A stretch of DNA of 64,000 nucleotides from Leidyana gryllorum EB-2025a (Eukaryota; Protista; Apicomplexa). The stretch spans positions 1 to 64,000 of the forward strand of contig JBLWGC010000216.1 of NCBI GenBank assembly GCA_048772705.1, given 5' to 3'. A program made the translations under genes and the position numbers. Shown one piece after another: positions 1 to 19,780 of this stretch (position 1 is its first letter; each line of letters starts with the position of its first letter). Below the pieces are notes generated by a model. It saw only the letters and a program-made list of their open reading frames with translations. It did not search any database and was not told the DNA's origin.

Positions 1-136
1 CGTTTCTGGGTTATTAGCGTCGAGCATCGTGGTCTAGCTTCTGTCTTTTGCAAAACAATAAACTACCGCTACGGGTGTTACGTCTCTAGGGAGACGTTGT
101 GTCTCTAGGAAGTTGTTACTTTCCTTTCACCTCTCA
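1..136 (-). repeat. 3' LTR (partial; about 35 bp lie outside the window)
   Basis: Exact match to 4807-4942, and it begins right after the PPT. Confidence 0.92.
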
Positions 137-146
137 CGCCCCCTCT
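137..146 (-). promoter_or_regulatory. Polypurine tract
   Basis: AGAGGGGGCG lies immediately 5' of the 3' LTR TG and overlaps the ORF stop codon. Confidence 0.85.
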
Positions 147-3100
147 AAAGAGCAACTTCCTGGGTGCCGGGATCTCTCACTTGGAGACATAGGCGGTAAG
201 CAGTGGCACTAGCACGGCTGGCCACTCGGCGTCTCTTCCGAGACCTTGACTTCGGGGCTGGCCGTAGGTCAGTTCCCCGAGCGTGTAGTGTTGCCGTCAG
301 CACATCCTCGGCCTTGGCGAGCGGCTTGGCGCGTAGGTCGGCGAGCTCGTCTAGCTCGGCGAGTTGGAGCATCTCCGGCGCTTGCGGTGCAGCCAAGCGG
401 AGCAGCTCCCCGACGGACACCGTTCTCTCTTCCTGCGGATCTCGGCAGGATTTAATGGTGGCGCCCGTGCCTGACTCGCTCACCGCGATGACCTCATAAG
501 GTAAGCTGAAGGTCGGGGTGAAGCGGCTCGCGCCGTAGTGGCGAGTCAGTGCAGCGCGCTCACCTTCGCTGAGGCGGACGACGACGGTGTCTCCGACCTC
601 AGGGAGGTAGCGTACGGCTGGGCGGCGAGCGTCGGCTGCTTTTGCCGAGAGTTGCACGGCGTGCTGCCTCGCCAGTTCCAGAAGTTGGAGACGGTCTCCC
701 GTGTCCAGTGTAGGCTGGAGGGCGTCTAACTCTTGGCTCGTCGGGGTGCCCATGGGTAGCCCCGAGAGCATGAAGAAGGGGGACTCACCCAATGCGGGGT
801 GATGCGTGGCTCGATAGGCGTACATTACTGTGGCCACTGCGGTTGGTAAGGGGAGGCTGGACTGGGCCACGAGCGCGTTGAGTCCACGGTTCAGGAACTG
901 GTGAAAGGCCTCGCATACTGCGTTCCCTTGCTTGTGGGCTTTCCAGGTGTACATGACCTGGATGCCATGGCGCCTCGCGTCTTCCTGGAACGACTCGGCC
1001 CTAAAGGCCGTGCCGTTATCACAAATGAGCCTCGTTGGGGCTCCGTACCGGCAGATCCAATCCTCGTAGAGGACTCGCCAGGCAGTCTTGGCCGTTACGT
1101 CCGGGACTGCTATGGCCTCGGCCACTCGTAGGCAATGGTCAATCATCGTTTGGATGTAGTAGACCTTACCACCCCAGGGGAAACTTCCTACGTGGTCAAT
1201 GGCCACCGTGTCGAACGGGCGTGGAGTCACGTGGTCTCCGGGGCCAGCGGTGTTTACGATTGCTCGACGGCGCGCGCAGATTTGGCATTGCCGCACCATC
1301 TCGGTTACGTCCGCTCGTAAGTTTGGCCAATAGAAGCGCCTCGCGATGGCTGCGGCTGTTCGCCTGATCCCTTGGTGGGCGCCAACAGTACCACAGTGGT
1401 GGTAGAGAACGATTTGAGAACGGAGTGCGGCTGGCACATAGGCTCGCATGGACTCCGTCCACCAGACTCCGCCCCTATGGGTGCAGCGGAAGGCGGTCGG
1501 CTCGCTCTCTGCGGCCGTCGCTGCTTTAAACTCTTCCAGCGTTGGCAGTGTGAAGCCAGTGTACGCTGGTTGAACCGAAATCTCGAGTCGGTTCAGGAGT
1601 GCGGTCAACGATATGCGGTCATCGATGACGGCATCCATCGGTTGGTCGTTGTCGATCCGGCTTAGGTGATCGACGTGACCCTGCAAAATCCCTTTACGGT
1701 AGTGGATCTCGAAGTCATACTCGCTCAGAGCGAGCGCCCATCGGGCGATCCGGCGGTTGGAGGCTGTCCAGAGCCACTTCAACCCCTCGTGGTCCGTACG
1801 GACTGTGAACGGTCGGTACCTCAGGTACTCGGCGTACTTCGCGATGGCACAGACGATGATGAAAGCTTCCAGTTCGCGGATAGGCCACTTCCTCTCCGCT
1901 TCCGACCATCGACGGGAGTAATAGGCGATTGGCCGGGGCTCTCCGTCGTCTCCGGGCTGCAGCAAGATGGCACCTCCTCCGATCTCACTAGCGTCGGTGT
2001 CGAGGATGAACTCCTTATCCGGATCGGGGTACGCTAAGAGGACGTCCTGCGCAAGTGCCTCTTGCAGTGCGCGGTAGGCCGCGACGGTCTCTTCCGTCTC
2101 ATCGATCGGCCCGTCTGCGCCCCCTTTGAACAGGTCGTACAGAGCACTCGAGATCTCGCCGAATTGGGGGATGAAGGTCCTGAAGTAGGATGCTAGCCCT
2201 AAGAACGAGCGAAGTTCCGACATCGTTCTGGGGAAGGGCGTCTCCATAACCGCCTTGACCTTGGCCGGGTTTGGCCGGATCCCATTCTCATTCACGACGT
2301 GCCCCAAGTACAGGATCTCCTTCTGGAGGGCCGATGACTTCTTGATGTTTAGGTACAGTTTCGCGTCAGTCAACCGTTTCAGGACCTCGTTGAGGGTCCG
2401 GTTGTGCTCATCGACGCTTCGCGAGTAGATGACGATATCATCCAAGTAAACTAGGACACCGTTCCCTAGTAGGGGTCCTAGCACTCTGTGCATGACTCGT
2501 TGGAAAGTGGCAGGCGCGTTCCGTAAGCCAAAAGGCATCGCCGTACAGGCGTACAGTCCTCGCGGGGTTACTATCGTCGTCTTCATCACGTCCTCCTCCG
2601 CCACCCTGATCTGATGGTACCCAGACTTCAGATCAAGAGATGTGAAGACGGCTGCTCCTCGCAGGGACCAGACCAAGTGTTGGATGTGGGGGAGCGGGAA
2701 CCTGTCCGGTACCGTGACTTTATTCAACTTGCGATAGTCAACGCAGATGCGTAGTTCGCCTGTCTTCTTGGGGACGATGACTACGGGCGAGGACCAGGGA
2801 GACCCTTCCACTGGTACCAGTGCTCCAACCTTCACGAGGTCGCCGAACTGGCGGTCCACTTCGGCCTCGGCGTCTGGGTGTAGGGGCCTGGCGCGCTGGA
2901 AGACAGGGCGTGCTCCAGGGGTGATCTCAATGCGGTGAGTCTCTATGTCGCACTTGGCGATGTGGGTCTTCGCCCAGCACGCCTCGTTCCGCTGGAAGAT
3001 CTCCAGTACGTCTCTCTTGGCCTCTGGACCAAAGACATCTGACGTGATTGCCATCACGTCCTCGAGGGTCCGGTGGTCGATGGCTTGCTGAAGCTCAACG

Positions 3101-4833
3101 AGGTTCAGCTCATAGGTTCCGCCCGGTGCCTCGAGTGGCACGGTTTCCCCTCCTATCTCCAGTGTTCGTGTTGCGTAGTCTAATCGACTGGCGGTGCCCA
3201 GTAGGTATGTACGGCCGAGTAAGTCGCTGCCGACCGCCTCGTCTGGCACCACTAGACAGCGCTCCAGTGCTGTGGTTGTGCCCACGGTTATCGGGATGGT
3301 CACCTCTCCCAAGATCTGTACTGCTCCTCCTACGCCCTTCGCCCCGAGCTGGCTGGCTCCCACTGTATCCGGCTGGGTCCCATGCTTCATCGCGTTCTGG
3401 AGTGTACTGCGCCTCAGGACTGTCACGTCCGCCCCAGGGTCCACCGTCATCACTATCGGAATATGACCAACGAGAGCTTTCACGCTGCCGAAGCTCTGCG
3501 AGAATGCGATCGTTTCGGCTGGGCTCATGGCCTGCGGCTGGCATTGTACACGACCCACGTGGGCCTGAGTCGCGGTGGGGGTCTCACCGGTGGGTTGCCG
3601 CTGCTGTTCCGTCGGGGGCGTCATGTCTTCGTCCACCTGGGTGGGCTCTGTAGTGTTTCCGGTCGCAGCCTGCTGGGAGGCGTTCCGGATGGCGTCTCTC
3701 TTGTCTCTCTGCCTGTCCCGGTTCTTCTGGTTCTTCATCGCCTCCTGCTGCTGCCGCTCTCGGAAGTAACCACCTAGCCTGCCCAGCGCCTCTTCGAGCG
3801 ACTTGGGCTGCTTTACTACGATGTGAACGGCAGTCTTCCTTTGGTGGAGGACCATCTGCGACCCTAACTGGATCTCCTTGACTTCGCAGTCCTGCTCACG
3901 GTGTCCCTTCGTGCCACACTTTGGGCAGGGGAGGCGACACCGAGTCTCCGTGTGTCCGGCTTGCTGACACCGGTAGCAAATGATTGGGGGCTTTGCTGTG
4001 CCCGTAGTGCCTATTGGGGCTGACTCGCCCGCTACGTGGTACAGACGTGGCCAGGAGGAGATAGTCTCTTCCTCACTGGACTCAGAGTCTGACGTATATC
4101 GAGCGTTGAGGCTTCGTAGTGCCGCTACGACCTCAGCCAACGTCTCGGGACGGGGGTGGAGCCCGTGTAACTTCGCGTTTAAGGCCGGCGGGGCCATGCG
4201 GACTAGGGTCGCCACCCAGTCCGTTTCTCGACGCCGCTTCCGCGGGTCCCAACGCTTACTCAACCTGTCGTGAGTCTTACGTAATGCCTTGAAGGTTCGG
4301 AGGGCCTCATTCAGTGTCTGGCACGGTGGTGGCCGCTGCGCTAGCTTCCGAATTTGACGGAACCAGTCTCCTCCCTCGAAGTGTTCGCGCACCAGCGCGT
4401 CGCAGAAAGCTGTTGCAGTCTCCGCCTGTATGTTCGAGGAGCTCAGAGTCTCTCCCAGAGACCCGCACGCTGTTGCCCTGATGAGCAAGGGGAGTGCTCG
4501 GTCTGGGTATCCACGCGCTGCCAGCGCTATGGCCCAGTTGTGGCATTGATCGTCAAATTCCTGTTCGGACGCGGGGTCGAAGGTCTGCTTGACCCTCAGT
4601 TGCTGGAACATCCGCGCAACCATGTCTGCGTCTCGTCTTCCTAGTGCAGGGCGACCCCTGTCATCTTCGTCTATGGACTCGTAACCACTGTCCTCACTGT
4701 CAGAGGGCCCCGGACCCCACGGATCCCAGGTGGGTACACTTACTCGCTGTTTCCCGGCAGATGCACCACTTTGAGTGGTTCTGGGAGTGCGAGGGCTTAA
4801 ATGATACGTTTCTGGGTTATTAGCGTCGAGCAT
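145..4833 (-). CDS. Gag-Pol polyprotein, single ORF (1562 aa from the first ATG)
   Basis: CCHC knuckles (CYRCQQAGHTETRC, CPKCGTKGHREQDC), protease DPGA, RT (LRICVDYRKLN, YLDD), RNase H (DTDAS...ELE...DH), integrase HHCC + DDE and a GPY/F-like region. Confidence 0.96.
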   Translation of the reverse strand: MLDANNPETYHLSPRTPRTTQSGASAGKQRVSVPTWDPWGPGPSDSEDSGYESIDEDDRGRPALGRRDADMVARMFQQLRVKQTFDPASEQEFDDQCHNWAIALAARGYPDRALPLLIRATACGSLGETLSSSNIQAETATAFCDALVREHFEGGDWFRQIRKLAQRPPPCQTLNEALRTFKALRKTHDRLSKRWDPRKRRRETDWVATLVRMAPPALNAKLHGLHPRPETLAEVVAALRSLNARYTSDSESSEEETISSWPRLYHVAGESAPIGTTGTAKPPIICYRCQQAGHTETRCRLPCPKCGTKGHREQDCEVKEIQLGSQMVLHQRKTAVHIVVKQPKSLEEALGRLGGYFRERQQQEAMKNQKNRDRQRDKRDAIRNASQQAATGNTTEPTQVDEDMTPPTEQQRQPTGETPTATQAHVGRVQCQPQAMSPAETIAFSQSFGSVKALVGHIPIVMTVDPGADVTVLRRSTLQNAMKHGTQPDTVGASQLGAKGVGGAVQILGEVTIPITVGTTTALERCLVVPDEAVGSDLLGRTYLLGTASRLDYATRTLEIGGETVPLEAPGGTYELNLVELQQAIDHRTLEDVMAITSDVFGPEAKRDVLEIFQRNEACWAKTHIAKCDIETHRIEITPGARPVFQRARPLHPDAEAEVDRQFGDLVKVGALVPVEGSPWSSPVVIVPKKTGELRICVDYRKLNKVTVPDRFPLPHIQHLVWSLRGAAVFTSLDLKSGYHQIRVAEEDVMKTTIVTPRGLYACTAMPFGLRNAPATFQRVMHRVLGPLLGNGVLVYLDDIVIYSRSVDEHNRTLNEVLKRLTDAKLYLNIKKSSALQKEILYLGHVVNENGIRPNPAKVKAVMETPFPRTMSELRSFLGLASYFRTFIPQFGEISSALYDLFKGGADGPIDETEETVAAYRALQEALAQDVLLAYPDPDKEFILDTDASEIGGGAILLQPGDDGEPRPIAYYSRRWSEAERKWPIRELEAFIIVCAIAKYAEYLRYRPFTVRTDHEGLKWLWTASNRRIARWALALSEYDFEIHYRKGILQGHVDHLSRIDNDQPMDAVIDDRISLTALLNRLEISVQPAYTGFTLPTLEEFKAATAAESEPTAFRCTHRGGVWWTESMRAYVPAALRSQIVLYHHCGTVGAHQGIRRTAAAIARRFYWPNLRADVTEMVRQCQICARRRAIVNTAGPGDHVTPRPFDTVAIDHVGSFPWGGKVYYIQTMIDHCLRVAEAIAVPDVTAKTAWRVLYEDWICRYGAPTRLICDNGTAFRAESFQEDARRHGIQVMYTWKAHKQGNAVCEAFHQFLNRGLNALVAQSSLPLPTAVATVMYAYRATHHPALGESPFFMLSGLPMGTPTSQELDALQPTLDTGDRLQLLELARQHAVQLSAKAADARRPAVRYLPEVGDTVVVRLSEGERAALTRHYGASRFTPTFSLPYEVIAVSESGTGATIKSCRDPQEERTVSVGELLRLAAPQAPEMLQLAELDELADLRAKPLAKAEDVLTATLHARGTDLRPAPKSRSRKRRRVASRASATAYRLCLQVRDPGTQEVAL
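4751..4768 (-). promoter_or_regulatory. Primer-binding site, tRNA-Gly
   Basis: Minus strand reads TGGTGCATCTGCCGGGAA. Its complement TTCCCGGCAGATGCACCA has the form of a tRNA-Gly(GCC) 3' end (T-arm TTCCCGG, acceptor ...TGCA, CCA). Confidence 0.85.
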
Positions 4834-4942
4834 CGTGGTCTAGCTTCTGTCTTTTGCAAAACAATAAACTACCGCTACGGGTGTTACGTCTCTAGGGAGA
4901 CGTTGTGTCTCTAGGAAGTTGTTACTTTCCTTTCACCTCTCA
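4772..4942 (-). repeat. 5' LTR (171 bp, TGAG...CTCA)
   Basis: On the minus strand it starts TGAGAG and ends CACTCA, 3 nt before the PBS. It is identical to the visible part of the other LTR. Confidence 0.92.
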
Positions 4943-7900
4943 CTCACCTATAGTGTCACTAAGAGTACTTTACCCGTCCATCGCAACCTGAAAACACATC
5001 GTCGGCGTCGAGTCAAGCCTCGTCCGCCCTCTCAGAAAGTCTCAGATGGGAGACACTGGACTTAGTTCAGTCCTCCCGAGGGCATCACATCACCGGAAGT
5101 GCAAAGGCTGCTCCGCCCTCTGCACGCCTCTTATTGATCAGACGGTTGCAATCCGCAGGTAAGTTGATTTTTGTAGCCAGTGCAAAGGGAGGTACCCGCC
5201 GTCTCGTCTCCGCCGACTCGCTGCCGTCTCCGTCGTCGGGTGCCTCGAGAGTTCTCAGCCTACTGAGCCATTCGATGTGCCAATCTCACCTACAGTGTCA
5301 CTAAGAGTACTTTACCCGTCCATCGCAACCTGAAAACACATCGTCGGCGTCGAGTCAAGCCTCGTCCGCCCTCTCAGAAAGTCTCAGATGGGAGACACTG
5401 AACTTAGTTCAGTCCTCCCGAGGGCCTCACATCACCGGAAGTGCAAAGGCTGCTCCGCCCTCTGCACGCCTCTTATTGATCAGACGGTTGCAATCCGCAG
5501 GTAAGTTGATTTTTGTAGATAGTGAACAGGGAGGTACCCGCCGTCTCGTCTCCGCCGACTCGCTACCGTCTCCGTCGTCGGGTGCCTCGAGAGTTCTCAG
5601 CCTACTGAACCATTTGATGTGCCAATCTCACCTATAGTGTCACTAAGAGTACCGTACCCGTCAATCGCAGCCTGAAAACACATTGTCGGCGTCGAGTCAA
5701 GCCTCGTCCGCCCTCTCAGAAAGTCTCAGATGGGAGACACTGAACTTAGTTCAGTCCTCCCGAGGGCATCACATCACCGGAAGTGCAAAGGCTGCTCCGC
5801 CCTCTGCACGCCTCTTATTGATCAGACGGTTGCAATCCGCAGGTAAGTTGATTTTTGTAGCCAGTGCAAAGGGAGGTACCCGCCGTCTCGTCTCCGCCGA
5901 CTCGCTGCCGTCTCCGTCGTCGGGTGCCTCGAGAGTTCTCAGCCTACTGAGCCATTCGATGTGCCAATCTCACCTACAGTGTCACTAAGAGTACTTTACC
6001 CGTCCATCGCAACCTGAAAACACATCGTCGGCGTCGAGTCAAGCCTCGTCCGCCCTCTCAGAAAGTCTCAGATGGGAGACACTGAACTTAGTTCAGTCCT
6101 CCCGAGGGCCTCACATCACCGGAAGTGCAAAGGCTGCTCCGCCCTCTGCACGCCTCTTATTGATCAGACGGTTGCAATCCGCAGGTAAGTTGATTTTTGC
6201 AGATAGTGAACAGGGAGGTACCCGCCGTCTCGTCTCCGCCGACTCGCTACCGTCTCCGTCGTCGGGTGCCTCGAGAGTTCTCAGCCTACTGAACCATTTG
6301 ATGTGCCAATCTCACCTATAGTGTCACTAAGAGTACCGTACCCGTCAATCGCAGCCTGAAAACACATTGTCGGCGTCGAGTCAAGCCTCGTCCGCCCTCT
6401 CAGAAAGTCTCAGATGGGAGACACTGAACTTAGTTCAGTCCTCCCGAGGGCCTCACATCACCGGAAGTGCAAAGGCTGCTCCGCCCTCTGCACGCCTCTT
6501 ATTGATCAGACGGTTGCAATCCGCAGGTAAGTGGATTTTTGTAGATAGTGAACAGGGAGGTACCCGCCGTCTCGTCTCCGCCGACTCGCTGCCGTCTCCG
6601 TCGTCGGGTGCCTCGAGAGTTCTCAGCCTACTGAGCCATTCGATGTGCCAATCTCACCTACAGTGTCACTAAGAGTACTTTACCCGTCCATCGCAACCTG
6701 AAAACACATTGTCGGCGTCGAGTCAAGCCTCGTCCGCCCTCTCAGAAAGTCTCAGATGGGAGACACTGGACTTAGTTCAGTCCTCCCGAGGGCCTCACAT
6801 CACCGGAAGTGCAAAGGCTGCTCCGCCCTCTGCACGCCTCTTATTGATCAGACGGTTGCAATCCGCAGGTAAGTTGATTTTTGCAGATAGTGAACAGGGA
6901 GGTACCCGCCGTCTCGTCTCCGCCGACTCGCTACCGTCTCCGTCGTCGGGTGCCTCGAGAGTTCTCAGCCTACTGAGCCATTCGATGTGCCAATCTCACC
7001 TATAGTGTCACTAAGAGTACCGTACCCGTCAATCGCAGCCTGAAAACACATTGTCGGCGTCGAGTCAAGCCTCGTCCGCCCTCTCAGAAAGTCTCAGATG
7101 GGAGACACTGGACTTAGTTCAGTCCTCCCGAGGGCCTCACATCACCGGAAGTGCAAAGGCTGCTCCGCCCTCTGCACGCCTCTTATTGATCAGACGGTTG
7201 CAATCCGCAGGTAAGTGGATTTTTGTAGATAGTGAACAGGGAGGTACCCGCCGTCTCGTCTCCGCCGACTCGCTGCCGTCTCCGTCGTCGGGTGCCTCGA
7301 GAGTTCTCAGCCTACTGAGCCATTCGATGTGCCAATCTCACCTACAGTGTCACTAAGAGTACTTTACCCGTCCATCGCAACCTGAAAACACATCGTCGGC
7401 GTCGAGTCAAGCCTCGTCCGCCCTCTCAGAAAGTCTCAGATGGGAGACACTGAACTTAGTTCAGTCCTCCCGAGGGCCTCACATCACCGGAAGTGCAAAG
7501 GCTGCTCCGCCCTCTGCACGCCTCTTATTGATCAGACGGTTGCAATCCGCAGGTAAGTTGATTTTTGTAGCCAGTGCAAAGGGAGGTACCCGCCGTCTCG
7601 TCTCCGCCGACTCGCTGCCGTCTCCGTCGTCGGGTGCCTCGAGAGTTCTCAGCCTACTGAACCATTCGATGTGCCAATCTCACCTACAGTGTCACTAAGA
7701 GTACTTTACCCGTCCATCGCAACCTGAAAACACATTGTCGGCGTCGAGTCAAGCCTCGTCCGCCCTCTCAGAAAGTCTCAGATGGGAGACACTGGACTTA
7801 GTTCAGTCCTCCCGAGGGCCTCACATCACCGGAAGTGCAAAGGCTGCTCCGCCCTCTGCACGCCTCTTATTGATCAGACGGTTGCAATCCGCAGGTAAGT

Positions 7901-10900
7901 TGATTTTTGCAGATAGTGAACAGGGAGGTACCCGCCGTCTCGTCTCCGCCGACTCGCTACCGTCTCCGTCGTCGGGTGCCTCGAGAGTTCTCAGCCTACT
8001 GAACCATTTGATGTGCCAATCTCACCTATAGTGTCACTAAGAGTACCGTACCCGTCAATCGCAGCCTGAAAACACATTGTCGGCGTCGAGTCAAGCCTCG
8101 TCCGCCCTCTCAGAAAGTCTCAGATGGGAGACACTGAACTTAGTTCAGTCCTCCCGAGGGCCTCACATCACCGGAAGTGCAAAGGCTGCTCCGCCCTCTG
8201 CACGCCTCTTATTGATCAGACGGTTGCAATCCGCAGGTAAGTTGATTTTTGTAGATAGTGAACAGGGAGGTACCCGCCGTCTCGTCTCCGCCGACTCGCT
8301 GCCGTCTCCGTCGTCGGGTGCCTCGAGAGTTCTCAGCCTACTGAGCCATTCGATGTGCCAATCTCACCTACAGTGTCACTAAGAGTACTTTACCCGTCCA
8401 TCGCAACCTGAAAACACATCGTCGGCGTCGAGTCAAGCCTCGTCCGCCCTCTCAGAAAGTCTCAGATGGGAGACACTGGACTTAGTTCAGTCCTCCCGAG
8501 GGCCTCACATCACCGGAAGTGCAAAGGCTGCTCCGCCCTCTGCACGCCTCTTATTGATCAGACGGTTGCAATCCGCAGGTAAGTTGATTTTTGCAGATAG
8601 TGAACAGGGAGGTACCCGCCGTCTCGTCTCCGCCGACTCGCTACCGTCTCCGTCGTCGGGTGCCTCGAGAGTTCTCAGCCTACTGAACCATTTGATGTGC
8701 CAATCTCACCTATAGTGTCACTAAGAGTACCGTACCCGTCAATCGCAGCCTGAAAACACATTGTCGGCGTCGAGTCAAGCCTCGTCCGCCCTCTCAGAAA
8801 GTCTCAGATGGGAGACACTGAACTTAGTTCAGTCCTCCCGAGGGCCTCACATCACCGGAAGTGCAAAGGCTGCTCCGCCCTCTGCACGCCTCTTATTGAT
8901 CAGACGGTTGCAATCCGCAGGTAAGTTGATTTTTGTAGATAGTGAACAGGGAGGTACCCGCCGTCTCGTCTCCGCCGACTCGCTGCCGTCTCCGTCGTCG
9001 GGTGCCTCGAGAGTTCTCAGCCTACTGAGCCATTCGATGTGCCAATCTCACCTACAGTGTCACTAAGAGTACTTTACCCGTCCATCGCAACCTGAAAACA
9101 CATCGTCGGCGTCGAGTCAAGCCTCGTCCGCCCTCTCAGAAAGTTCTCAGATGGGAGACACTGAACTTAGTTCAGTCCTCCCGAGGGCCTCACATCACCG
9201 GAAGTGCAAAGGCTGCTCCGCCCTCTGCACGCCTCTCATTGATCAGACGGTTGCAATCCGCAGGTAAGTTGATTTTTGTAGATAGTGAACAGGGAGGTAC
9301 CCGCCGTCTCGTCTCCGCCGACTCGCTGCCGTCTCCGTCGTCGGGTGCCTCGAGAGTTCTCAGCCTACTGAACCATTCGATGTGCCAATCTCACCTACAG
9401 TGTCACTAAGAGTACTTTACCCGTCCATCGCAACCTGAAAACACATCGTCGGCGTCGAGTCAAGCCTCGTCCGCCCTCTCAGAAAGTCTCAGATGGGAGA
9501 CACTGGACTTAGTTCAGTCCTCCCGAGGGCATCACATCACCGGAAGTGCAAAGGCTGCTCCGCCCTCTGCACGCCTCTTATTGATCAGACGGTTGCAATC
9601 CGCAGGTAAGTTGATTTTTGTAGCCAGTGCAAAGGGAGGTACCCGCCGTCTCGTCTCCGCCGACTCGCTGCCGTCTCGTCTCCGCCGACTCGCTGCCGTC
9701 TCCGTCGTCGGGTGCCTCGAGAGTTCTCAGCCTACTGAGCCATTCGATGTGCCAATCTCACCTACAGTGTCACTAAGAGTACTTTACCCGTCCATCGCAA
9801 CCTGAAAACACATCGTCGGCGTCGAGTCAAGCCTCGTCCGCCCTCTCAGAAAGTCTCAGATGGGAGACACTGAACTTAGTTCAGTCCTCCCGAGGGCCTC
9901 ACATCACCGGAAGTGCAAAGGCTGCTCCGCCCTCTGCACGCCTCTTATTGATCAGACGGTTGCAATCCGCAGGTAAGTTGATTTTTGTAGATAGTGAACA
10001 GGGAGGTACCCGCCGTCTCGTCTCCGCCGACTCACTGCCGTCTCCGTCGTCGGGTGCCTCGAGAGTTCTCAGCCTACTGAACCATTCGATGTGCCAATCT
10101 CACCTACAGTGTCACTAAGAGTACTTTACCCGTCCATCGCAACCTGAAAACACATTGTCGGCGTCGAGTCAAGCCTCGTCCGCCCTCTCAGAAAGTCTCA
10201 GATGGGAGACACTGGACTTAGTTCAGTCCTCCCGAGGGCCTCACATCACCGGAAGTGCAAAGGCTGCTCCGCCCTCTGCACGCCTCTTATTGATCAGACG
10301 GTTGCAATCCGCAGGTAAGTTGATTTTTGCAGATAGTGAACAGGGAGGTACCCGCCGTCTCGTCTCCGCCGACTCGCTGCCGTCTCCGTCGTCGGGTGCC
10401 TCGAGAGTTCTCAGCCTACTGAGCCATTCGATGTGCCAATCTCACCTACAGTGTCACTAAGAGTACTTTACCCGTCCATCGCAACCTGAAAACACATCGT
10501 CGGCGTCGAGTCAAGCCTCGTCCGCCCTCTCAGAAAGTCTCAGATGGGAGACACTGGACTTAGTTCAGTCCTCCCGAGGGCATCACATCACCGGAAGTGC
10601 AAAGGCTGCTCCGCCCTCTGCACGCCTCTTATTGATCAGACGGTTGCAATCCGCAGGTAAGTTGATTTTTGTAGCCAGTGCAAAGGGAGGTACCCGCCGT
10701 CTCGTCTCCGCCGACTCGCTGCCGTCTCCGTCGTCGGGTGCCTCGAGAGTTCTCAGCCTACTGAGCCATTCGATGTGCCAATCTCACCTACAGTGTCACT
10801 AAGAGTACTTTACCCGTCCATCGCAACCTGAAAACACATCGTCGGCGTCGAGTCAAGCCTCGTCCGCCCTCTCAGAAAGTCTCAGATGGGAGACACTGAA

Positions 10901-13806
10901 CTTAGTTCAGTCCTCCCGAGGGCCTCACATCACCGGAAGTGCAAAGGCTGCTCCGCCCTCTGCACGCCTCTCATTGATCAGACGGTTGCAATCCGCAGGT
11001 AAGTTGATTTTTGTAGATAGTGAACAGGGAGGTACCCGCCGTCTCGTCTCCGCCGACTCACTGCCGTCTCCGTCGTCGGGTGCCTCGAGAGTTCTCAGCC
11101 TACTGAACCATTCGATGTGCCAATCTCACCTACAGTGTCACTAAGAGTACTTTACCCGTCCATCGCAACCTGAAAACACATCGTCGGCGTCGAGTCAAGC
11201 CTCGTCCGCCCTCTCAGAAAGTCTCAGATGGGAGACACTGGACTTAGTTCAGTCCTCCCGAGGGCATCACATCACCGGAAGTGCAAAGGCTGCTCCGCCC
11301 TCTGCACGCCTCTTATTGATCAGACGGTTGCAATCCGCAGGTAAGTTGATTTTTGTAGCCAGTGCAAAGGGAGGTACCCGCCGTCTCGTCTCCGCCGACT
11401 CGCTGCCGTCTCCGTCGTCGGGTGCCTCGAGAGTTCTCAGCCTACTGAGCCATTCGATGTGTCAATCTCACCTACAGTGTCACTAAGAGTACTTTACCCG
11501 TCCATCGCAACCTGAAAACACATTGTCGGCGTCGAGTCAAGCCTCGTCCGCCCTCTCAGAAAGTCTCAGATGGGAGACACTGAACTTAGTTCAGTCCTCC
11601 CGAGGGCCTCACATCACCGGAAGTGCAAAGGCTGCTCCGCCCTCTGCACGCCTCTTATTGATCAGACGGTTGCAATCCGCAGGTAAGTTGATTTTTGTAG
11701 ATAGTAAACAGGGAGGTACCCGCCGTCTCGTCTCCGCCGACTCGCTGCCGTCTCCGTCGTCGGGTGCCACGAGAGTCCTCAGCCTACTGAGGCATTTGTT
11801 GTGCCAATCTCACCTATAGTGTCACTAAGAGTACTTTACCCGTCCATCGCAACCTGAAAACACATCGTCGGCGTCGAGTCAAGCCTCGTCCGCCCTCTCA
11901 GAAAGTCTCAGATGGGAGACACTGAACTTAGTTCAGTCCTCCCGAGGGCCTCACATCACCGGAAGTGCAAAGGCTGCTCCGCCCTCTGCACGCCTCTTAT
12001 TGATCAGACGGTTGCAATCCGCAGGTAAGTTGATTTTTGTAGATAGTGAACAGGGAGGTACCCGCCGTCTCGTCTCCGCCCACCCGCTGCCGTCTCCGCC
12101 GTCGGGTGCCTCGAGAGTTCTCAGCCTACTGAACCATTCGATGTGCCAATCTCACCTACAGTGTCACTAAGAGTACTTTACCCGTCCATCGCAACCTGAA
12201 AACACATCGTCGGCGTCGAGTCAAGCCTCGTCCGCCCTCTCAGAAAGTCTCAGATGGGAGACACTGAACTTAGTTCAGTCCTCCCGAGGGCCTCACATCA
12301 CCGGAAGTGCAAAGGCTGCTCCGCCCTCTGCACGCCTCTTATTGATCAGACGGTTGCAATCCGCAGGTAAGTTGATTTTTGTAGATAGTGAACAGGGAGG
12401 TACCCGCCGTCTCGTCTCCGCCGACTCACTGCCGTCTCCGTCGTCGGGTGCCTCAAGAGTTCTCAGCCTACTGAACCATTCGATGTGCCAATCTCACCTA
12501 CAGTGTCACTAAGAGTACTTTACCCGTCCATCGCAACCTGAAAACACATCGTCGGCGTCGAGTCAAGCCTCGTCCGCCCTCTCAGAAAGTCTCAGATGGG
12601 AGACACTGAACTTAGTTCAGTCCTCCCGAGGGCCTCACATCACCGGAAGTGCAAAGGCTGCTCCGCCCTCTGCACGCCTCTCATTGATCAGACGGTTGCA
12701 ATCCGCAGGTAAGTTGATTTTTGTAGATAGTGAACAGGGAGGTACCCGCCGTCTCGTCTCCGCCGACTCACTGCCGTCTCCGTCGTCGGGTGCCTCGAGA
12801 GTTCTCAGCCTACTGAACCATTCGATGTGCCAATCTCACCTACAGTGTCACTAAGAGTACTTTACCCGTCCATCGCAACCTGAGAACACATCGTCGGCGT
12901 CGAGTCAAGCCTCGTCCGCCCTCTCAGAAAGTCTCGGATGGGAGACACTGGACTTAGTTCAGTCCTCCCGAGGGCATCACATCACCGGAAGTGCAAAGGC
13001 TGCTCCGCCCTCTGCACGCCTCTTATTGATCAGACGGTTGCAATCCGCAGGTAAGTTGATTTTTGTAGCCAGTGCAAAGGGAGGTACCCGCCGTCTCGTC
13101 TCCGCCGACTCGATGCCGTCTCCGTCGTCGGGTGCCTCGAGAGTTCTCAGCCTACTGAGCCATTCGATGTGTCAATCTCACCTACAGTGTCACTAAGAGT
13201 ACTTTACCCGTCCATCGCAACCTGAAAACACATTGTCGGCGTCGAGTCAAGCCTCGTCCGCCCTCTCAGAAAGTCTCAGATGGGAGACACTGAACTTAGT
13301 TCAGTCCTCCCGAGGGCCTCACATCACCGGAAGTGCAAAGGCTGCTCCGCCCTCTGCACGCCTCTTATTGATCAGACGGTTGCAATCCGCAGGTAAGTTG
13401 ATTTTTGTAGATAGTAAACAGGGAGGTACCCGCCGTCTCGTCTCCGCCGACTCACTGCCGTCTCCGTCGTCGGGTGCCTCGAGAGTTCTCAGCCTACTGA
13501 ACCATTCGATGTGCCAATCTCACCTACAGTGTCACTAAGAGTACTTTACCCGTCCATCGCAACCTGAGAACACATCGTCGGCGTCGAGTCAAGCCTCGTC
13601 CGCCCTCTCAGAAAGTCTCGGATGGGAGACACTGGACTTAGTTCAGTCCTCCCGAGGGCATCACATCACCGGAAGTGCAAAGGCTGCTCCGCCCTCTGCA
13701 CGCCTCTTATTGATCAGACGGTTGCAATCCGCAGGTAAGTTGATTTTTGTAGCCAGTGCAAAGGGAGGTACCCGCCGTCTCGTCTCCGCCGACTCGCTGC
13801 CGTCTC
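4943..13806. repeat. 342-bp tandem array, 26 near-identical units
   Basis: The GTCGGCGTC anchor recurs at 5001, 5343 ... 8763, 9105, 9448 (+1), 9815 (+25), 10157 ... 13577. Confidence 0.98.
5001..13741 (-). ncRNA. U1: 26 tandem U1 snRNA genes (165 nt each; first 5001-5165, last 13577-13741)
   Basis: Minus strand: 5' AACTTACCTG (5' splice-site pairing), helix H CGGAT/ATCTG, SL1 loop GATCAATAAG (U1-70K type), SL2 loop TTTGCAC (U1A type), SL3, Sm-like ACTTTCTG and SL4 GGCG..CGAG/CTCG.CGCC. Order and length match U1. Confidence 0.93.
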
Positions 13807-13954: not shown

Positions 13955-15337
13955 TTAAGACAAAATCTCACTCAAGACTCGTGTAACATGGTCGGCTGCA
14001 TTATTGCGAATATGATCTGCATGATTGAGGTGCAGCTCGGCAGACCGTTTGAGAATTGTTTCGTCGGAGAGACATGTATTGATACGTTCCACAATGACAT
14101 CTCGGTCAAGGTGTTTGGACGATGATGACTGCAGCCACAGCTCTTTACCAATGTTCCAAATTCTTTCGGCCACTTCAGCGTCCAAAGGTTGATCTCCTGC
14201 GACGGGGATGAATGCTTTGGGGATTGGGGTGAGAGCAATGCCCTCAGTCAAACTATTCCACCCACAATGGGTCACGAAGAGTTTGAGCGCGCGATGTCGC
14301 AAGACTCTTTTCTGGTTCACCCACGGGACGATTCGGTGGTCAATCTGGATGTTTTCAAAGAGGCCGATGGGAAGACCAAAGTTGTCGCATTCAGTGGGAG
14401 ACGGTGGAGATGTCGAATCCACGCCAACGACCGGAGGACGGAGAAAGCCTCGACAAGTCGCCATACGTTTCCTTAGCGCCCATAGGAAGGGAGCACCGAG
14501 TAGCCGTAACGCAGCCGCTAACTCAAGAAGATCAGGGGGACTCAATTGTACCCATGAGCCCAGCGCAATGTAGATCACTGATCGATCGGGTTGGGTATCG
14601 AGCCACTCGATGACCCCATTGGGATCCTCATTATCCCGAGCTGATCGATCGAGGAGGTCATTGACATAACCGACCGGATAGACTTTGCCTTTAGCAAATT
14701 TTGAAGTAGACACCAACATGTCCCTTTCAACAGTCTCCTTCAATAATGCGAACCCGGGCTGGCATGGGCTGTCGTTGACGATGAGACTTCGAGTGCGACC
14801 GGGGGGGAGAAATACCGCAGGATCTGGGTTGTCGACATATATCATGCGGTCACAACTCACAGTACCCAAGCCCTCAATCGTCTGCTCCTCACTTAGAAGA
14901 GCCGACCGCCTCCGCCAGCCGAATTTCTCAACCACATAGAAACTGTGGAGAGCAAGAACAGCGAAGCCGAATCCTTTTATCCCCAAAACTTCAGCTAACT
15001 CATTACCCCACGTGAGGAAGAAGTCGTAGACAAGTGCAACCGGTCGCAGCTTGCTGGCGTGTACCCTGCTCTCCTTGATCAAATGGTCCGAGTGTTCTGC
15101 AAACCACCTCAGCTGTTCGGAGATGCTCAAAACCAGCACTTCGTCTGGGAGATAGACGGGTAGAATACCAACATTTGGGTATTCCTCGGACGGGATCGGC
15201 CGATTATTCATCATCGGTAGCAGTAAATGGCATTTCACCTCTCCTTTCCCGAATTTGTGCAGCAACTCTCCAAATGCCATCAAAGGACGCACATGCCCCT
15301 CGCACCGTAAGGTTACGAGCAGAATGTCCCGAGCCAT
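13955..15337 (-). CDS. UDP-glycosyltransferase (GT1, plant-type PSPG box), copy 1
   Basis: N-terminal GHVRP, YD, and WVNQ..VL.H...FVTHCGWNS.TE...DQ. Intronless. ATG at 15337 (the ORF-track start is TTG). Confidence 0.92.
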   Translation of the reverse strand: MARDILLVTLRCEGHVRPLMAFGELLHKFGKGEVKCHLLLPMMNNRPIPSEEYPNVGILPVYLPDEVLVLSISEQLRWFAEHSDHLIKESRVHASKLRPVALVYDFFLTWGNELAEVLGIKGFGFAVLALHSFYVVEKFGWRRRSALLSEEQTIEGLGTVSCDRMIYVDNPDPAVFLPPGRTRSLIVNDSPCQPGFALLKETVERDMLVSTSKFAKGKVYPVGYVNDLLDRSARDNEDPNGVIEWLDTQPDRSVIYIALGSWVQLSPPDLLELAAALRLLGAPFLWALRKRMATCRGFLRPPVVGVDSTSPPSPTECDNFGLPIGLFENIQIDHRIVPWVNQKRVLRHRALKLFVTHCGWNSLTEGIALTPIPKAFIPVAGDQPLDAEVAERIWNIGKELWLQSSSSKHLDRDVIVERINTCLSDETILKRSAELHLNHADHIRNNAADHVTRVLSEILS

Positions 15338-15896
15338 CTCGTGAGCTTTACTGCAATCGCAGCCGATCAACACCTCGTCAAAGCGTTTTAAATCCTATTT
15401 GACTTGTTGGGAAGCTAGCGAGACGACCTACCCGAACCCACGTACGACTTCTAGCTGGGCAAAAAGCACAGATTGACTCAAAATGGTATCCACGAGCCGT
15501 CCTTTGCTCATGTGCTGCTTTTAGGGATGCCGCAAAAGCACTAAGAGGGCTGGAAACATAGGCTGCTGGCATCACGTCAGCTCGCGAAGGAGGTTCCCAA
15601 CGGGATTTAGTCGCTTCGGTCCAGTCTGAGTGAGTGAAGTGGGCAGCGGAGAAGCGGTGGGTGACGGGGACGGGGACGGACCGCCCACTTTCTGCAACGA
15701 GTCAACGGAAAGTGCTCTGCCATTGTAAGAACAGTGGCTTGGACTGAACTCTCCCATACTTGTGGCATTGCCACACTCAAGGGCTGACCAGATACGGCTT
15801 CTGCAGGATCGCCCTCGTTCAAAAGATAAAACACCGCACACCAAGGAGGACGAGACGGCGGGTACCTCGCTGTTTCTTTCACTGGCTACAAAAATC

Positions 15897-16061
15897 AACT
15901 TACCTGCGGATTGCAACCGTCTGATCAATAAGAGGCGTGCAGAGGGCGGAGCAGCCTTTGCACTTCCGGTGATGTGAGGCCCTCGGGAGGACTGAACTAA
16001 GTTCAGTGTCTCCCATCTGAGACTTTCTGAGAGGGCGGACGAGGCTTGACTCGACGCCGAC
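15897..16061 (+). ncRNA. U1: U1 snRNA gene, array-type, inverted relative to the array
   Basis: Reverse complement of the array unit. Confidence 0.9.
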
Positions 16062-16238
16062 GATGTGTTTTCAGGTTGCGATGGACGGGTAAAGTACTCT
16101 TAGTGACACTATAGGTGAGATTGGCACATCGAATGGCTCAGTAGGCTGAGGACTCTCGAGGCGTCCGACGACGGAGACGGCAGCGATTCGGCGGAGACGA
16201 GACGGCGGGTACCTCGCTGTTCACTGGCTACAAAAATC

Positions 16239-16403
16239 AACTTACCTGCGGATTGCAACCGTCTGATCAATAAGAGGCGTGCAGAGGGCGGAGCAGCCTT
16301 TGCACTTCCGGTGATGTGATGCCCTCGGGAGGACTGAACTAAGTCCAGTGTCTCCCATCTGAGACTTTCTGAGAGGGCGGACGAGGCTTGACTCGACGCC
16401 GAC
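16239..16403 (+). ncRNA. U1: U1 snRNA gene, array-type
   Basis: 342 bp after the previous copy. Similarity to the array stops exactly at the U1 3' end. Confidence 0.9.
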
Positions 16404-16552
16404 TAGGAATGAAAAAGGCATCAGCATTAGATTAAAACTGCTGTAGAAGATCACACTGTGACAATTCACGTGGTCACCCTTGCGGAGACTGGATGATCCT
16501 CTGCGTGTCCCCATTCTCACTCTCATCATTTCAGTACATATCTGTGTGACTG

Positions 16553-17962
16553 ATGGATCAACGAGACATTCTTTTGATTACAATTCAGGCCCATGGCCAT
16601 TTTCGTCCCTTCATGGCTTTGGGCGAGCTGTTATATCGGTACAGCAACGGAAGTGTACGGAGTCATTTGTTATTCCCAATGACTGAGGATGGCAAACTAC
16701 CGACTAGCGAATTTCCGAATGTCTCAATCCATCCGATAGAAGCTCCGGAGTCCGTCAGAACAATGACAGATCAAATGGAACGATGGAAATGGACGATGAG
16801 TCACGGGGACGAAATGATTGGTCCCGCGTGTGAGTATGCGAGCAGTCTGCGACCCATCAGCGTCATCTACGAGTCTTTCTTGGGGTGGGCCCATAATGTC
16901 GCCGAGATTTTGGGGCTGAGAAGTTTCGCATTCTGCACATTCGCACTTCACACTTATTACATCACTGGCAAAGTTGGATGGAACCCGAAAAAGGCTTCTA
17001 CGGATGAGCAGAGAACAATTGAAGGCCTGGGTACCCTGAGTCACCAATGTCTGCCTTACGCGGACGTAGATTTGCTCACCGGCTTTCAGCCGCCTGGCCG
17101 ATCCCGCAGTATAATTGCCAATGACAGTCCGTGCCAACCGGGTTTGAGCATTCTACAGAACCTTGTCGAACGGGAAATGCTCGTGCCGACCTCAAAATAT
17201 GATAAGGGTGTTGTGCACACACTTGGATATCTAAATGATCTGCTGCCGGCAGACAATTCCGTAGACGCCGTTGACGAGACAATTGCGTGGCTCGACTCTC
17301 ATCCAGACCGGTCCGTGATCTTTGTGGCGCTGGGCTCCTGGGTCGAACTTGATGTGTGCGATCTTGTTGAGTTGGGCGAGGGTCTGATGTTACTCGATAC
17401 TCCCTTCTTGTGGGCGCTCAGAGCCCGAGTTGGTAAAGACACGGGGAGTAACGGCTCTCCGGATGTCGAGGGAGGAGAGCAACCCGAAGGCACCCGACTT
17501 CGAACGCCCCCTGCAGAGATGGACGAATACGGTCTTCCCCTGAATTACACGGAAAGGATAAAGGGACGGTCGCTCATAGTGCCGTGGGTGAACCAGAAGC
17601 GGGTCCTGAAGCATCGAGCCATCAAGTTGTTCATTACCCACTGTGGATGGAACAGTTTGACAGAGAGTGTTGCTCTCAGTCCTGTACCAAAGGCCTTTGT
17701 TCCAGTTGCCGGAGAACAAGCCCTCAACGCGGAGGTGGCGGAACGGTTCTGGAAGGTGGGGAAGCAGCTGTGGGTGGACGGATCACCCAAGACACTCCAC
17801 CGCGATGTTATTGTTGAGAGAATTAACCACTGTCTGACCGACAACACTATCATCTGCAGTTCCCAAAAGGTTCATGAAGATCACCAAAGCCATCTTAACC
17901 AGAATGCCGAACTGTGCGTTCGACGGCTATTGGCAGAGATACAAAGTCAAAGTATTAGTTAG
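16553..17962 (+). CDS. UDP-glycosyltransferase, copy 2
   Basis: GHFRP, PSPG box WVNQKRVLKH...HCGWNS...EQ. Intronless. Confidence 0.93.
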   Translation: MDQRDILLITIQAHGHFRPFMALGELLYRYSNGSVRSHLLFPMTEDGKLPTSEFPNVSIHPIEAPESVRTMTDQMERWKWTMSHGDEMIGPACEYASSLRPISVIYESFLGWAHNVAEILGLRSFAFCTFALHTYYITGKVGWNPKKASTDEQRTIEGLGTLSHQCLPYADVDLLTGFQPPGRSRSIIANDSPCQPGLSILQNLVEREMLVPTSKYDKGVVHTLGYLNDLLPADNSVDAVDETIAWLDSHPDRSVIFVALGSWVELDVCDLVELGEGLMLLDTPFLWALRARVGKDTGSNGSPDVEGGEQPEGTRLRTPPAEMDEYGLPLNYTERIKGRSLIVPWVNQKRVLKHRAIKLFITHCGWNSLTESVALSPVPKAFVPVAGEQALNAEVAERFWKVGKQLWVDGSPKTLHRDVIVERINHCLTDNTIICSSQKVHEDHQSHLNQNAELCVRRLLAEIQSQSIS

Positions 17963-18049
17963 TTAGAAGAGAACCAGTTGACACAAACAGTAGCGAACCG
18001 AAGTTAAGAGTCCCCAATACATTCTCATCTGGATCTGACCTGACCTGAC

Positions 18050-19780
18050 GGTCGGGGAAAGGAAGGGAACAACAGAGACAACAGATTGCGCAAACCGACT
18101 GTGGAAGAACTTCAGGGCTCGTATCACACCATAACTGAGACCGAGAAGGCTCGTCTTCGTCAAGAAGAAAGACGGAACGTGGCGACTCTGAATCCGTCCC
18201 GGAGGGATTCATCGAAACTTGCGATCGTCGACCAACCTACCTCTCCAACCCAGTCATCGTCTGGAAAGGAGATAAGGGAAGAGTTACTGCGTCGACTTCC
18301 TCCGATTGACCGCGGCTGCGGCTTTGTCAACCGCCCCGTCAAAGACGCTTGTGTTCAGCTAAACCGCTCGACAGACAATGTATGAGGTGTCAAGGGAAAG
18401 CAGCAGATTCCCCGGGTCACCGTTCATAGACCATAGATGACCGGCACTTTTGACTACGTGAATTCTGAGTTGAACACTCGTCCATCCCGAACCGCCCAAC
18501 GTGGCTGACGAGAGTCCACACTCATTTCTGCGTTATGACTGAATGTTCCCCTTCTGTGTGAGTAGATAGAAAATGGGCAGAGTTGGGAGCCGACCTCCCG
18601 CACCATCTCAATCATCCAACGCCCACGGCGATCAGAGACAACGACCGCGGTGCCTGAGCAACACGACTGGACTACCTGACCTTTTGTTAGTGAACTTCGA
18701 TGGCAGAGACTTCCGAGTGTGGCAAAAGGGCCGTGTAGGACAAAGCGTCTCTCTCCCTCCCCCCAGTTTGAGCCGCGATGGAGATCGCGTGAGCGATTGT
18801 GCAGCTCAAACCTTTACTTTTTGTAACATCAGGAAATCGTTATGAGCCCGCGCTGCGCTGTGTCTCCCCGTGTGAAGGGTGTGTAACCTGCTGTGTGTGG
18901 AAAATTGAATCACAGTTTGAGCACATGAACGACTTTGGTGGTGAACTACTCTGAAGAACACAAGTTGTACGCGCCAGCAGACGTCAGGTGAACAGATATT
19001 GCGCCATAAGAGGCCGTGATCGGGGTGGATCCATCTGCGAGGTGTCCAAGAGGGCCCTCATCTGCGCTGACCCCGTTTTGAGCATTGACAAGATAGAGTT
19101 GGGTCCTTCAACGACCAAATTACTGTGTGCTGCGATTTAGCCATCGACGCAGCCCAAGCAACCCTTTCACCCTATCTAATCAATAGTAAAGATTTTCTCC
19201 CTCTCTCAGGTTCAACAATGGAGTCTTCTTTAAGCGAAGCCATAATACAACGGAGAAGCCTCTGACTATTGATTGTGAAAGACTTCATCACAGTGGAAAC
19301 ATTGTAGCATATCATGTAGCAACGCAGCGAAATATCGAACATGGGGATTCCATGTTCTGCTTATTGATAGATACTGTCCGCTTGGCCCGCCTGCCACAAG
19401 GAGCCAACCATCACGAATCCGGTCGAGAATGCATAATACAGAGAGCCAACAGACACGGCGTGCGTCCGCAGCGCAAAGCAGACGGTTCGCTCCTGTAGTC
19501 GACCCCTCGTATGCTCATCGTCCAGTCGTGCGGCACAATATGCGCGGGCAGCGAATCACAAGTCGGTTGCAGAACCTTCTGAGGATTCTGGCGCTTTACG
19601 ATTGTATCCCGATTGCACCAGTCGGTACCACGACTACTGAACAAATTGAAGGAAGATTACGATCACAGGCAGTTTTGAGAGGCGTCCGTGTGTCAATAAC
19701 TCAAGAAAACAGCAGAGTGCAACAGCAGTTAAAGGTCATCGAGGCAGATAGTGGGGCGAGAACCGTAAAATGATTTTCGA
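18050..19780 (+). pseudogene. Probable decayed Mutator-like (MULE) transposase
   Basis: Colinear broken fragments resemble MULE motifs: NTTGLPDLLLVNFDG (~18660), PLLFVT..RYEPAL..VSP....CCVWKI (~18810-18910), STMESS (~19215) and SWIM-like C..KY..MGIPCS (~19315-19360). Boundaries approximate. Confidence 0.4.

Follow-up and report, generated by a model that had tools for sequence, protein, structure and literature searches.

Tandem U1 snRNA genes in minimal 342-bp units in the gregarine Leidyana gryllorum

Tandem U1 genes in animals and in L. gryllorum

Sea urchins and Xenopus carry tandemly repeated embryonic U1 snRNA genes, in units of ∼1–2 kb. These large animal genomes hold tens to hundreds of such units, whose presumed role is to provide U1 for large cells. 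The array described here, from the apicomplexan Leidyana gryllorum, likewise consists of complete head-to-tail U1 genes with their own (here putative) promoters, and likewise represents one variant amplified beside others. Unlike the animal arrays, it has a unit of just 342 bp and belongs to a protist with a 15.5 Mb genome. It lies in a stretch of 64,000 nucleotides (contig JBLWGC010000216.1, positions 1–64,000, assembly GCA_048772705.1), hereafter the window.

For Xenopus, PMC5786027 (refs 88–90) cites work on differential U1 expression. Tandem U1 genes with polymorphic spacers occur in a metazoan parasite (work of 1991/1996, cited in PMC7238142); its spacers, unlike those of L. gryllorum, carry microsatellites used for typing. 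The human U1 and variant-U1 families and the RNU2 array (PMC5786027; PMC8457000) resemble the present system in having many paralogous variants with changes in the protein-binding loops and homogenization within clusters, and some of the human U1 variants are functional. Human U1 genes, however, form loose clusters within very long repeats, and many of the variants carry changes in the segment pairing with the 5′ splice site, whereas 62 of 62 L. gryllorum copies keep ACUUACCUG. Arrays of 5S rRNA genes are similar in having units of a few hundred bp, made up of a small RNA gene and a spacer, and in evolving in concert (PMC3123226). 5S genes are transcribed by Pol III from internal promoters, whereas the conserved putative control block of the present units is located upstream, like that of Pol II-type snRNA genes.

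The array is not a new kind of system, as tandem U1 arrays and variant U1 families have long been known in animals. The number of U1 genes is unusually large for so small a genome. To our knowledge, the apicomplexan parasites studied so far have one or a few genes per spliceosomal RNA, and a set of 62 U1 genes in 15.5 Mb, of which two thirds belong to minimal tandem units, would stand out from this pattern. Our literature search found no study of gregarine snRNA genes. As far as we know, snRNA promoters are essentially uncharacterized in this lineage, and the array shows in compact form what would make up a complete snRNA gene there, with its putative promoter block, start site and 3′ signal. 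It also offers a test case for whether or not U1 dosage is selected independently of other snRNAs. We read the locus, from its sequence, as a working, high-dosage U1 gene array kept by unequal exchange and gene conversion, and assign this reading a probability of roughly 0.68.

Layout of the main array

The window contains one tandem array at positions 4943–13806, with a period of 342 bp and 25.8 copies as determined by TRF. It consists of 26 head-to-tail units, as the initial annotation had claimed, and 26 of 26 carry a match on the minus strand to the full length of the Rfam U1 model RF00003 (model positions 1–166). Each unit comprises a 165-nt U1 gene and, as also annotated, a 177-bp spacer that holds the 3′ flank of one gene and the putative promoter of the next (e.g., 5167–5343, minus strand). 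Gene-to-gene spacing is 342 bp with two exceptions, one of 343 bp and one of 367 bp; the latter arises from a 25-bp tandem duplication within a single spacer (9645–9702; TRF period 25, 2.3 copies, 100% match), which repeats part of the promoter region. The only visibly impaired unit (9106–9271, minus strand, 166 nt) scores lowest with Rfam among the array units, at 41.6 bits, and contains a 1-nt insertion adjoining the Sm-like site and an A35G substitution in the SL1 loop. Two inverted copies (15896–16402) and a diverged singleton (20199–20365) bring the window total to 29 U1 genes.

An array of this kind might be over-expanded or collapsed in the assembly, such that the true copy number is far from 26. 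The contig starts inside a Gypsy element, identical copies of which break the assembly on contigs C159, C41, C8 and C102, and the array itself is cut 59 bp into a spacer, with its other flank missing from the assembly. However, the 25 complete units include 21 distinct sequences, which form structured haplotypes with a weak two-unit periodicity (98.2% identity at lag 2 vs 97.1% at lag 1), a pattern not expected from copying a single unit over and over. An independent array of 12 units with unique flanks is also present on contig C159. We regard a gross copy-number artefact as very improbable.

Identity of the U1 genes

Outside the array, RF00003 matches the window at 15896–16060, 16238–16402 and 20199–20365, all on the plus strand. 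Scores range from 38.2 to 51.4 bits across the window and from 41.6 to 51.4 bits within the array, with E-values of ∼1e-9 to 4e-6. The Rfam gathering score for U1 is 69.5 bits, and the U1 matches surface only in E-value mode. A default Rfam scan of the window returns no U1, because the scores fall below this threshold; U3 alone passes a gathering score. The best U1 in the entire genome scores 68.9 bits, so that the 69.5-bit cut-off excludes every U1 of this lineage. The RF00003 search proposed for the array thus yields full-length matches with E-values down to ∼1e-9, albeit below the curated cut-off.

The commonest coding sequence, common to 11 of the 29 window copies, is represented by the gene at 5344–5508 (minus strand), whose boundaries and parts follow from the cmscan alignment, a sequence census and covariation. 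It contains, in order, the 5′ ACUUACCUG, helix H, stem-loops SL1, SL2 and SL3, an Sm-like site and SL4. The single-stranded ACUUACCUG is invariant in 29/29 window copies and in 20/20 aligned genomic variants; RNAs with this 5′ end are therefore predicted to base-pair with GUAAGU at 5′ splice sites in the manner of an ordinary U1 snRNP. The actin intron in the window begins G|GTAAGT. The SL1 loop of the array type, GAUCAAUAAG, differs by one change from the U1-70K motif AUCAnGAAG, and the SL2 loop, UUUGCAC, by one change from the U1A motif AUUGCAC; other U1 paralogues of the genome vary at the same loop positions. Genes for U1-70K and U1C are both present in the genome.

The Sm-like site of the array type, ACUUUCUGA, is correctly placed between helix H and SL4. 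Its second position is a C, whereas Sm sites of the AAUUUNUGG-like consensus usually have A or U there. Elsewhere in the genome, one U5 gene has the site ACUUUGUGG and the U4 genes have AAUUUCUG. Given the C-type site in a U5 gene and the variability of snRNA Sm sites, the lineage seems to tolerate the C.

Structural covariation among U1 paralogues

The four-way junction of helix H, SL1, SL2 and SL3, followed by SL4, is supported by both the full-length model alignment and covariation. Among 20 paralogous U1 variants, all from this same genome, 27 of 40 base pairs show compensatory double changes, as compared with 3–13 when the pairing partners are slid. Similarly, 93.6% of cells in the 20-paralogue alignment are paired, vs 40–49% with slid partners, and none of 500 shuffles reaches the observed covariation values. 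A single unit folded alone does not adopt the cloverleaf as its minimum free energy structure (z = −1.5). The claim that each unit folds as a U1 cloverleaf plus SL4 is therefore upheld by the covariance-model alignment and the paralogue covariation, but not by single-unit folding. Two specific predictions of the initial annotation are borne out: T123C, present in the units at 12894 and 13578, converts a helix-H G-U pair to G-C, and the copy at 20199 (given there as 20200) has compensatory changes in SL1, SL2 and SL3. Twelve of the 29 window copies have T108C, which disrupts an A-U pair in SL3. The naturally occurring U1 variants and their compensatory changes map the positions tolerated by the U1 proteins of the lineage.

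A putative promoter block and 3′ signal

We propose that the 342-bp unit is a self-contained snRNA-type gene, in which an upstream promoter and a short 3′ signal accompany the 165-nt U1 coding region. The candidate promoter would comprise GAGACG repeats (near −64, −44 and −39), GTACC (near −30) and a stretch rich in A that runs up to the start site, predicted at the C/A immediately before ACUUACCUG. A promoter-like block, GAGACGAGACGGCGGGTAC, is present in every unit (5534–5552, minus strand, positions −44 to −26 of the gene at 5344–5508). This block hardly varies over 37 units, with π of 0.003 vs 0.047 for the whole spacer. Related motifs also occur upstream of other U1, U2, U4, U5 and U3 genes: GRGACR is found between −75 and −20 in 24 of 28 independent snRNA-type genes, vs 13% of random windows. 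The proposed 3′ signal is GACA or GACG at the RNA end, and GACA is found there in 18 of the 28 genes, vs 7% background. Both motifs were picked post hoc from the same data to which these counts refer. The pattern suggests that the conserved block acts as a promoter and that each unit thus has its own, from which the gene would be transcribed. A genome search for SNAPC3 (PF12251) gave no match, and the controls likewise gave no response.

Among the contigs of the genome, the spacer sequence occurs only in the two arrays and in the two inverted copies. A hidden RNA within the spacer was considered and rejected, as the spacer has no Rfam match at E-values up to 10, no tRNA and no surplus of folding (z = +0.73).

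U1 and other snRNA genes in the genome

The genome is small (15.5 Mb) and gene-dense, in line with the compactness first noted from the window. A search with a model built from the genome's own U1s identified at least 62 strong U1 genes, and the earlier figure of at least 29, while correct for the window, is an underestimate genome-wide. Forty-one of the 62 are of the array type, because the 62 include the second array, on C159, and a solitary copy on C41. The latter differs by 1 nt in its coding region and has flanks unrelated to those of the arrays. About 20 divergent U1 paralogues are dispersed in the genome. Other snRNAs yielded 11 matches for U2 (seven over the cut-off), 5 for U4, 14 for U5 and 8 for U6. 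The comparison of copy numbers that had been suggested as a check thus points to specific amplification of U1, with 62 genes vs 5–14 matches for each other snRNA. We propose that the array raises the dosage of one U1 sequence type, with 26 copies here and 41 genome-wide. Two metagenome scans revealed no relative of the array: an exact 31-mer gave no matches, and among the 20 hits to an 18-base degenerate pattern a single AT-rich contig contained a weak U1-like match (25.9 bits).

It is tempting to speculate further that these genes form a multi-variant U1 system of at least five structural classes, which share the splice-site-pairing end and differ in their protein-binding loops and Sm sites. 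One class, whose minimal 342-bp units represent a ∼40-fold amplification, could saturate a very large, single-nucleus cell with U1, either for splicing or for the non-splicing role of U1 in suppressing premature 3′-end formation in a gene-dense genome, and the others could form specialized or stage-specific snRNPs. We offer this broader scheme as a doubtful, though conceivable, extension.

Concerted evolution and probable selection on the coding region

The array units are 97–98% alike, and the window and C159 arrays have mosaic haplotypes in common. Within the window array, π is 0.008 in the coding region vs 0.039 in the spacer, a ∼5-fold difference, and 12 of 165 coding sites segregate vs 42 of 177 spacer sites (Fisher p = 2.6e-5). 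Coding diversity is 3- to 5-fold below spacer diversity. The likeness of the units, the shared haplotypes and the low coding diversity together match what concerted evolution under purifying selection for the gene would leave. The units would be homogenized, and the array altered in size, by unequal exchange and gene conversion, with selection preserving both coding region and promoter block. The low coding diversity could in part stem from gene conversion instead of selection.

These data also bear on a quite different origin, in which the array is a neutral or selfish, satellite-like growth of a U1 variant by unequal crossing-over and is largely silent or minor, with working U1 supplied by dispersed paralogues. 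Two such paralogues, on contigs C104 and C121, score higher than the array genes (68.9 and 63.1 bits) and have canonical AAUUU Sm sites (AAUUUAUG / AAUUUCUG). The non-canonical Sm-like site and loop changes of the array type fit this origin, as do the SL3 mismatch in 12 of 29 window copies, the one unit with an insertion adjoining the Sm-like site, and the position of both arrays at contig ends, next to nested copies of a young Gypsy element. It is at odds with the ∼5-fold reduction in coding diversity and the almost invariant promoter block, with the near-identical coding sequence of the solitary copy amid unrelated flanks, and with the C-type Sm site of a U5 gene in a genome whose snRNA Sm sites vary. 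We consider a silent array unlikely and favor a working, high-dosage array, whose RNAs would assemble into U1 snRNPs.

A Gypsy element at the array edge

The array is interrupted 59 bp downstream of its last U1 gene by the 5′ LTR of a Ty3/Gypsy element (4772–4942, minus strand, 171 bp, TG...CA), delimited by comparison of LTR copies and their sequences. The remainder of the element (1–4771, minus strand) contains a pol ORF with RT, RNase H and integrase domains identified by Pfam, and a 3′ LTR (1–137) that is cut by the contig start; the LTRs are 100% identical. The array might have expanded because of this retroelement or be its preferred target, and the LTR does abut the array within a spacer. 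However, other 100% identical copies are nested in copies of the same element, on C41 and C159, outside U1 DNA, and no Gypsy element is found at the edges of the C159 array, the inverted copies or the solitary C41 copy. The insertion flanks differ, GACAG for the C159 copy vs CTCAC for the window copy, and the two are therefore separate insertions. We give such a connection, which the initial annotation had raised, hardly any credence: the element merely landed in one spacer.

An element specific for U1 is ruled out by the identical copies within the element's own copies. Joining the C159 end to the window start via the Gypsy element is likewise precluded by the differing flanks. We also rejected C159 as a second-haplotype assembly of the window region, as only the array and Gypsy sequences match.

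U1 genes upstream of UDP-glycosyltransferase genes

The two inverted copies form a mini-array (15848–16403, plus strand; U1 genes at 15896–16060 and 16238–16402), defined by inverted repeats, sequence and Rfam matches, that is 97–98% complementary to the main array. A UDP-glycosyltransferase (UGT) paralogue (Pfam PF00201) lies between the two arrays (13955–15373, minus strand), and another directly downstream of the mini-array (16553–17962, plus strand; PF00201). The mini-array starts just 5′ of the promoter block and stops at the 3′ end of U1, leaving 150 bp to the downstream UGT gene. The same arrangement of U1 followed by UGT is found on C159 and C41. Array edges fall at the upstream limit of the putative promoter, and the C159 array and mini-array also end at the U1 3′ end. 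The same U1 type stands in front of several UGT paralogues, and the arrays seem to have been seeded at such single-gene U1–UGT sites through homology-limited recombination. The diverged singleton (20199–20365, plus strand, 167 nt), which scores 38.2 bits with RF00003 and 173 bits with the genome's own model, lies 214 bp upstream of another UGT gene.

U1 gene array and predicted RNA fold

A single large tandem array occupies window positions 4943–13806 on the minus strand, with a period of 342 bp and 25.8 copies according to Tandem Repeats Finder. Each unit comprises a 165-nt U1 gene and a 177-bp spacer. The default Rfam scan of the window lacks U1, its sole report being a U3 snoRNA at 27813–27962 (+) (45.5 bits, the window's only match above its gathering score). 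A check with the U1 model RF00003, proposed in the initial annotation, was run in E-value mode and matched every main-array unit on the minus strand over the whole model (1–166) with E ∼1e-9, but at 41.6–51.4 bits. Two inverted copies (15896–16060 and 16238–16402) and a diverged copy (20199–20365), all on the plus strand, were matched in the same mode. All window U1s fall under the RF00003 gathering score of 69.5, which is not disqualifying because the best U1 anywhere in the genome (contig C104:252782–252944) reaches just 68.9 bits. The 26-copy, 342-bp array and the count of 29 U1 genes (26 array, two inverted and one diverged) first read from the sequence are thus borne out, and the window loci are almost certainly genuine U1 genes in an array that looks real.

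The commonest coding sequence, common to 11 of the 29 window copies, is 165 nt long. Its 5′ end, ACUUACCUG, is followed by helix H, SL1 (loop GAUCAAUAAG), SL2 (loop UUUGCAC), SL3, an Sm-like site (ACUUUCUGA) and SL4. Coding variation among window copies is confined to five positions and one insertion, which adjoins the Sm-like site in unit 9106 (units are named by window start). T123C converts a helix-H G-U pair to G-C in units 12894 and 13578, as had been noted for two units, and T108C breaks an A-U pair of SL3 in 12 of the 29 copies. One unit folded alone did not give the cloverleaf, and structure was therefore tested by covariation across an alignment of 20 distinct U1 paralogues from the same genome. 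RNAalifold recovered helix H and SL1–SL4, with compensatory changes in 27 of 40 pairs. Paired cells reach 93.6%, versus 40–49% when partners are slid by 1–3 columns, and double-change pairs number 27 versus 3–13 in these slid controls; none of 500 shuffles reached the observed values. ACUUACCUG is kept in all 20 variants. The initial claim of a full cloverleaf plus SL4 in each unit is therefore supported by covariation among paralogues but not by a lone-unit fold.

The U1 family across the genome

Contig C216, which opens with the window, is one of 237 contigs in a 15.5-Mb assembly. A covariance model made from the genome's own U1s identifies 62 strong U1 genes: 29 in the window, 12 in an array on contig C159, one solitary copy on contig C41 and about 20 dispersed paralogues. 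Array-type U1s account for 41 of the 62. A comparison suggested at the outset, with the other snRNAs, gave at least 11 matches for U2 (seven over the cut-off), 5 for U4, 14 for U5 and 8 for U6, all lower bounds; set against 62 U1s, these 5–14 matches per snRNA indicate that U1 is specifically amplified. The dispersed paralogues form several sequence classes differing in their SL1–SL3 stems and Sm sites (AAUUUAUG, AUUUUAUG and ACUUUCUG), and ACUUACCUG is retained throughout.

The second array (C159:287458–291430, +; L052:3459–7431) is built of the same 342-bp unit with 96% matches. The solitary copy (C41:16598–16762, −; L055:6598–6762) lies between UDP-glycosyltransferase (UGT) paralogues and departs from the array gene only at A35G, a single-base change also found in three array units. 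Its near-identity despite unrelated flanks argues that what is conserved is the coding sequence itself.

The genome has one gene each for U1-70K and U1C, and the short intron of the window's actin gene begins G/GTAAGT, complementary to the U1 5′ end. This gene (29689–30898, −) has a single intron of ∼49 nt (G/GTAAGT...CAG/G); its nearest relatives among solved structures are Toxoplasma and Plasmodium actins, and at least two more full-length matches to actin occur in the genome.

Sea urchin and Xenopus are known to have tandem U1 gene arrays. Work cited in PMC7238142 adds the tapeworm Echinococcus multilocularis. The genes are likewise in tandem here; what stands out is the very short unit, the host lineage and how large the U1 family is for a genome of this size. 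A literature search found no report of gregarine snRNA genes, and metagenome pattern scans found no relatives. The sole U1-like sequence among 20 metagenome pattern matches is weak (25.9 bits, 33% GC; L073:8862–9020) and lies on an unrelated 118-kb contig, Ga0193752_1000099.

Spacer conservation and candidate signals

Within the window array, nucleotide diversity is 0.008 in the coding region versus 0.039 in the spacer. Across the 37 complete units of the window and C159 arrays, 12 of 165 coding sites segregate versus 42 of 177 spacer sites (Fisher p = 2.6e-5). In this 37-unit alignment a promoter-like spacer block, GAGACGAGACGGCGGGTAC, at −44 to −26 from the U1 start is nearly invariant (π 0.003), and the adjoining stretch at −25 to −7 is the most variable of the spacer (π 0.116). 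A search of the spacer for further RNAs found none recognisable.

Motifs related to GRGACR also precede the other U1 paralogues as well as genes for U2, U4, U5 and U3; in many U1 genes a GTACC-like element is found near −30, and an A-rich stretch leads up to the start. Of 28 independent genes, 24 have GRGACR on one strand or the other at −75 to −20, versus 13% of random windows, and 18 have GACA at their mapped 3′ end, versus a 7% background. Both motifs were picked after data inspection, and the p-values are therefore indicative only. GACA is a candidate lineage-specific signal for 3′-end formation. It sits at or just past the mapped 3′ end in most Sm-class snRNA genes (U1, U4, U5, U3) and ∼10 nt further downstream in U2 genes. 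The window's U3 gene has a reverse-oriented GAGACA-type motif near −39 and GACA directly 3′. At this position the main array is polymorphic (GACG in 15 units, GACA in 11).

We estimate a probability of roughly two in three that the array is functional and raises U1 dosage; that it holds a mostly silent U1 variant is, in our judgement, unlikely. Variant U1 gene families occur in human, fly and frog, and some are differentially expressed (PMC5786027).

Gypsy element and array growth

A Ty3/Gypsy element with identical 171-bp LTRs occupies window positions 1–4942, its 3′ LTR truncated by the contig start. The 5′ LTR (4772–4942) cuts the array 59 bp past the last U1 gene, so the element inserted within the array; the remainder of the interrupted spacer was not found elsewhere. 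The initial annotation had raised, as one possibility, an expansion linked to this retroelement, which now appears very improbable. Other 100% identical copies are nested in copies of the same element on C41 and C159, and the borders of the other U1 loci are free of it, giving no evidence that it targets U1 or drove the expansion. The copies at C159:294000–302885 (L053) and C41:1–5177 (L054) are inserted head-to-head in one another. C159, C216, C8 and C102 all terminate within the element, which thus breaks the assembly, and more units may lie unassembled beyond the insertion. A seriously wrong copy number nonetheless seems improbable; 21 of the 25 complete window units are distinct.

Units in the window array average 98.2% identity at lag 2 versus 97.1% between neighbours, a weak two-unit periodicity. 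The C216 and C159 arrays have haplotype blocks in common, and one spacer carries a 25-bp duplication. All three arrays (the inverted pair, 15896–16402, included) begin ∼50–64 bp ahead of a U1 start, immediately beyond the promoter-like block, and the C159 array and inverted pair terminate at a U1 3′ end. Several U1s of this kind lie 150–430 bp upstream of a same-strand UGT at the inverted pair, the diverged copy, the C159 array and the C41 copy. The main array lies just downstream of a UGT (13955–15373), with the Gypsy element on its own downstream side; 3′ of the C159 array, a UGT follows after 240 bp, and beyond it the contig ends in nested Gypsy copies. A U1-then-UGT module may have spread via segmental duplication; arrays would then have grown by unequal exchange, having been seeded at single-gene sites through recombination confined to shared promoter-to-3′-end homology. 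Five intronless UGT paralogues (Pfam PF00201) cluster at 13955–27552, and further paralogues adjoin the U1 copies on C159 and C41. Possible decayed U1 remnants are a weak U1-like match at C159:286734–286898 (−) (38.6 bits with the own-genome model) and, immediately 5′ of the C159 array, a short sequence (L052:3320–3335) similar to the 3′ end of a U1.
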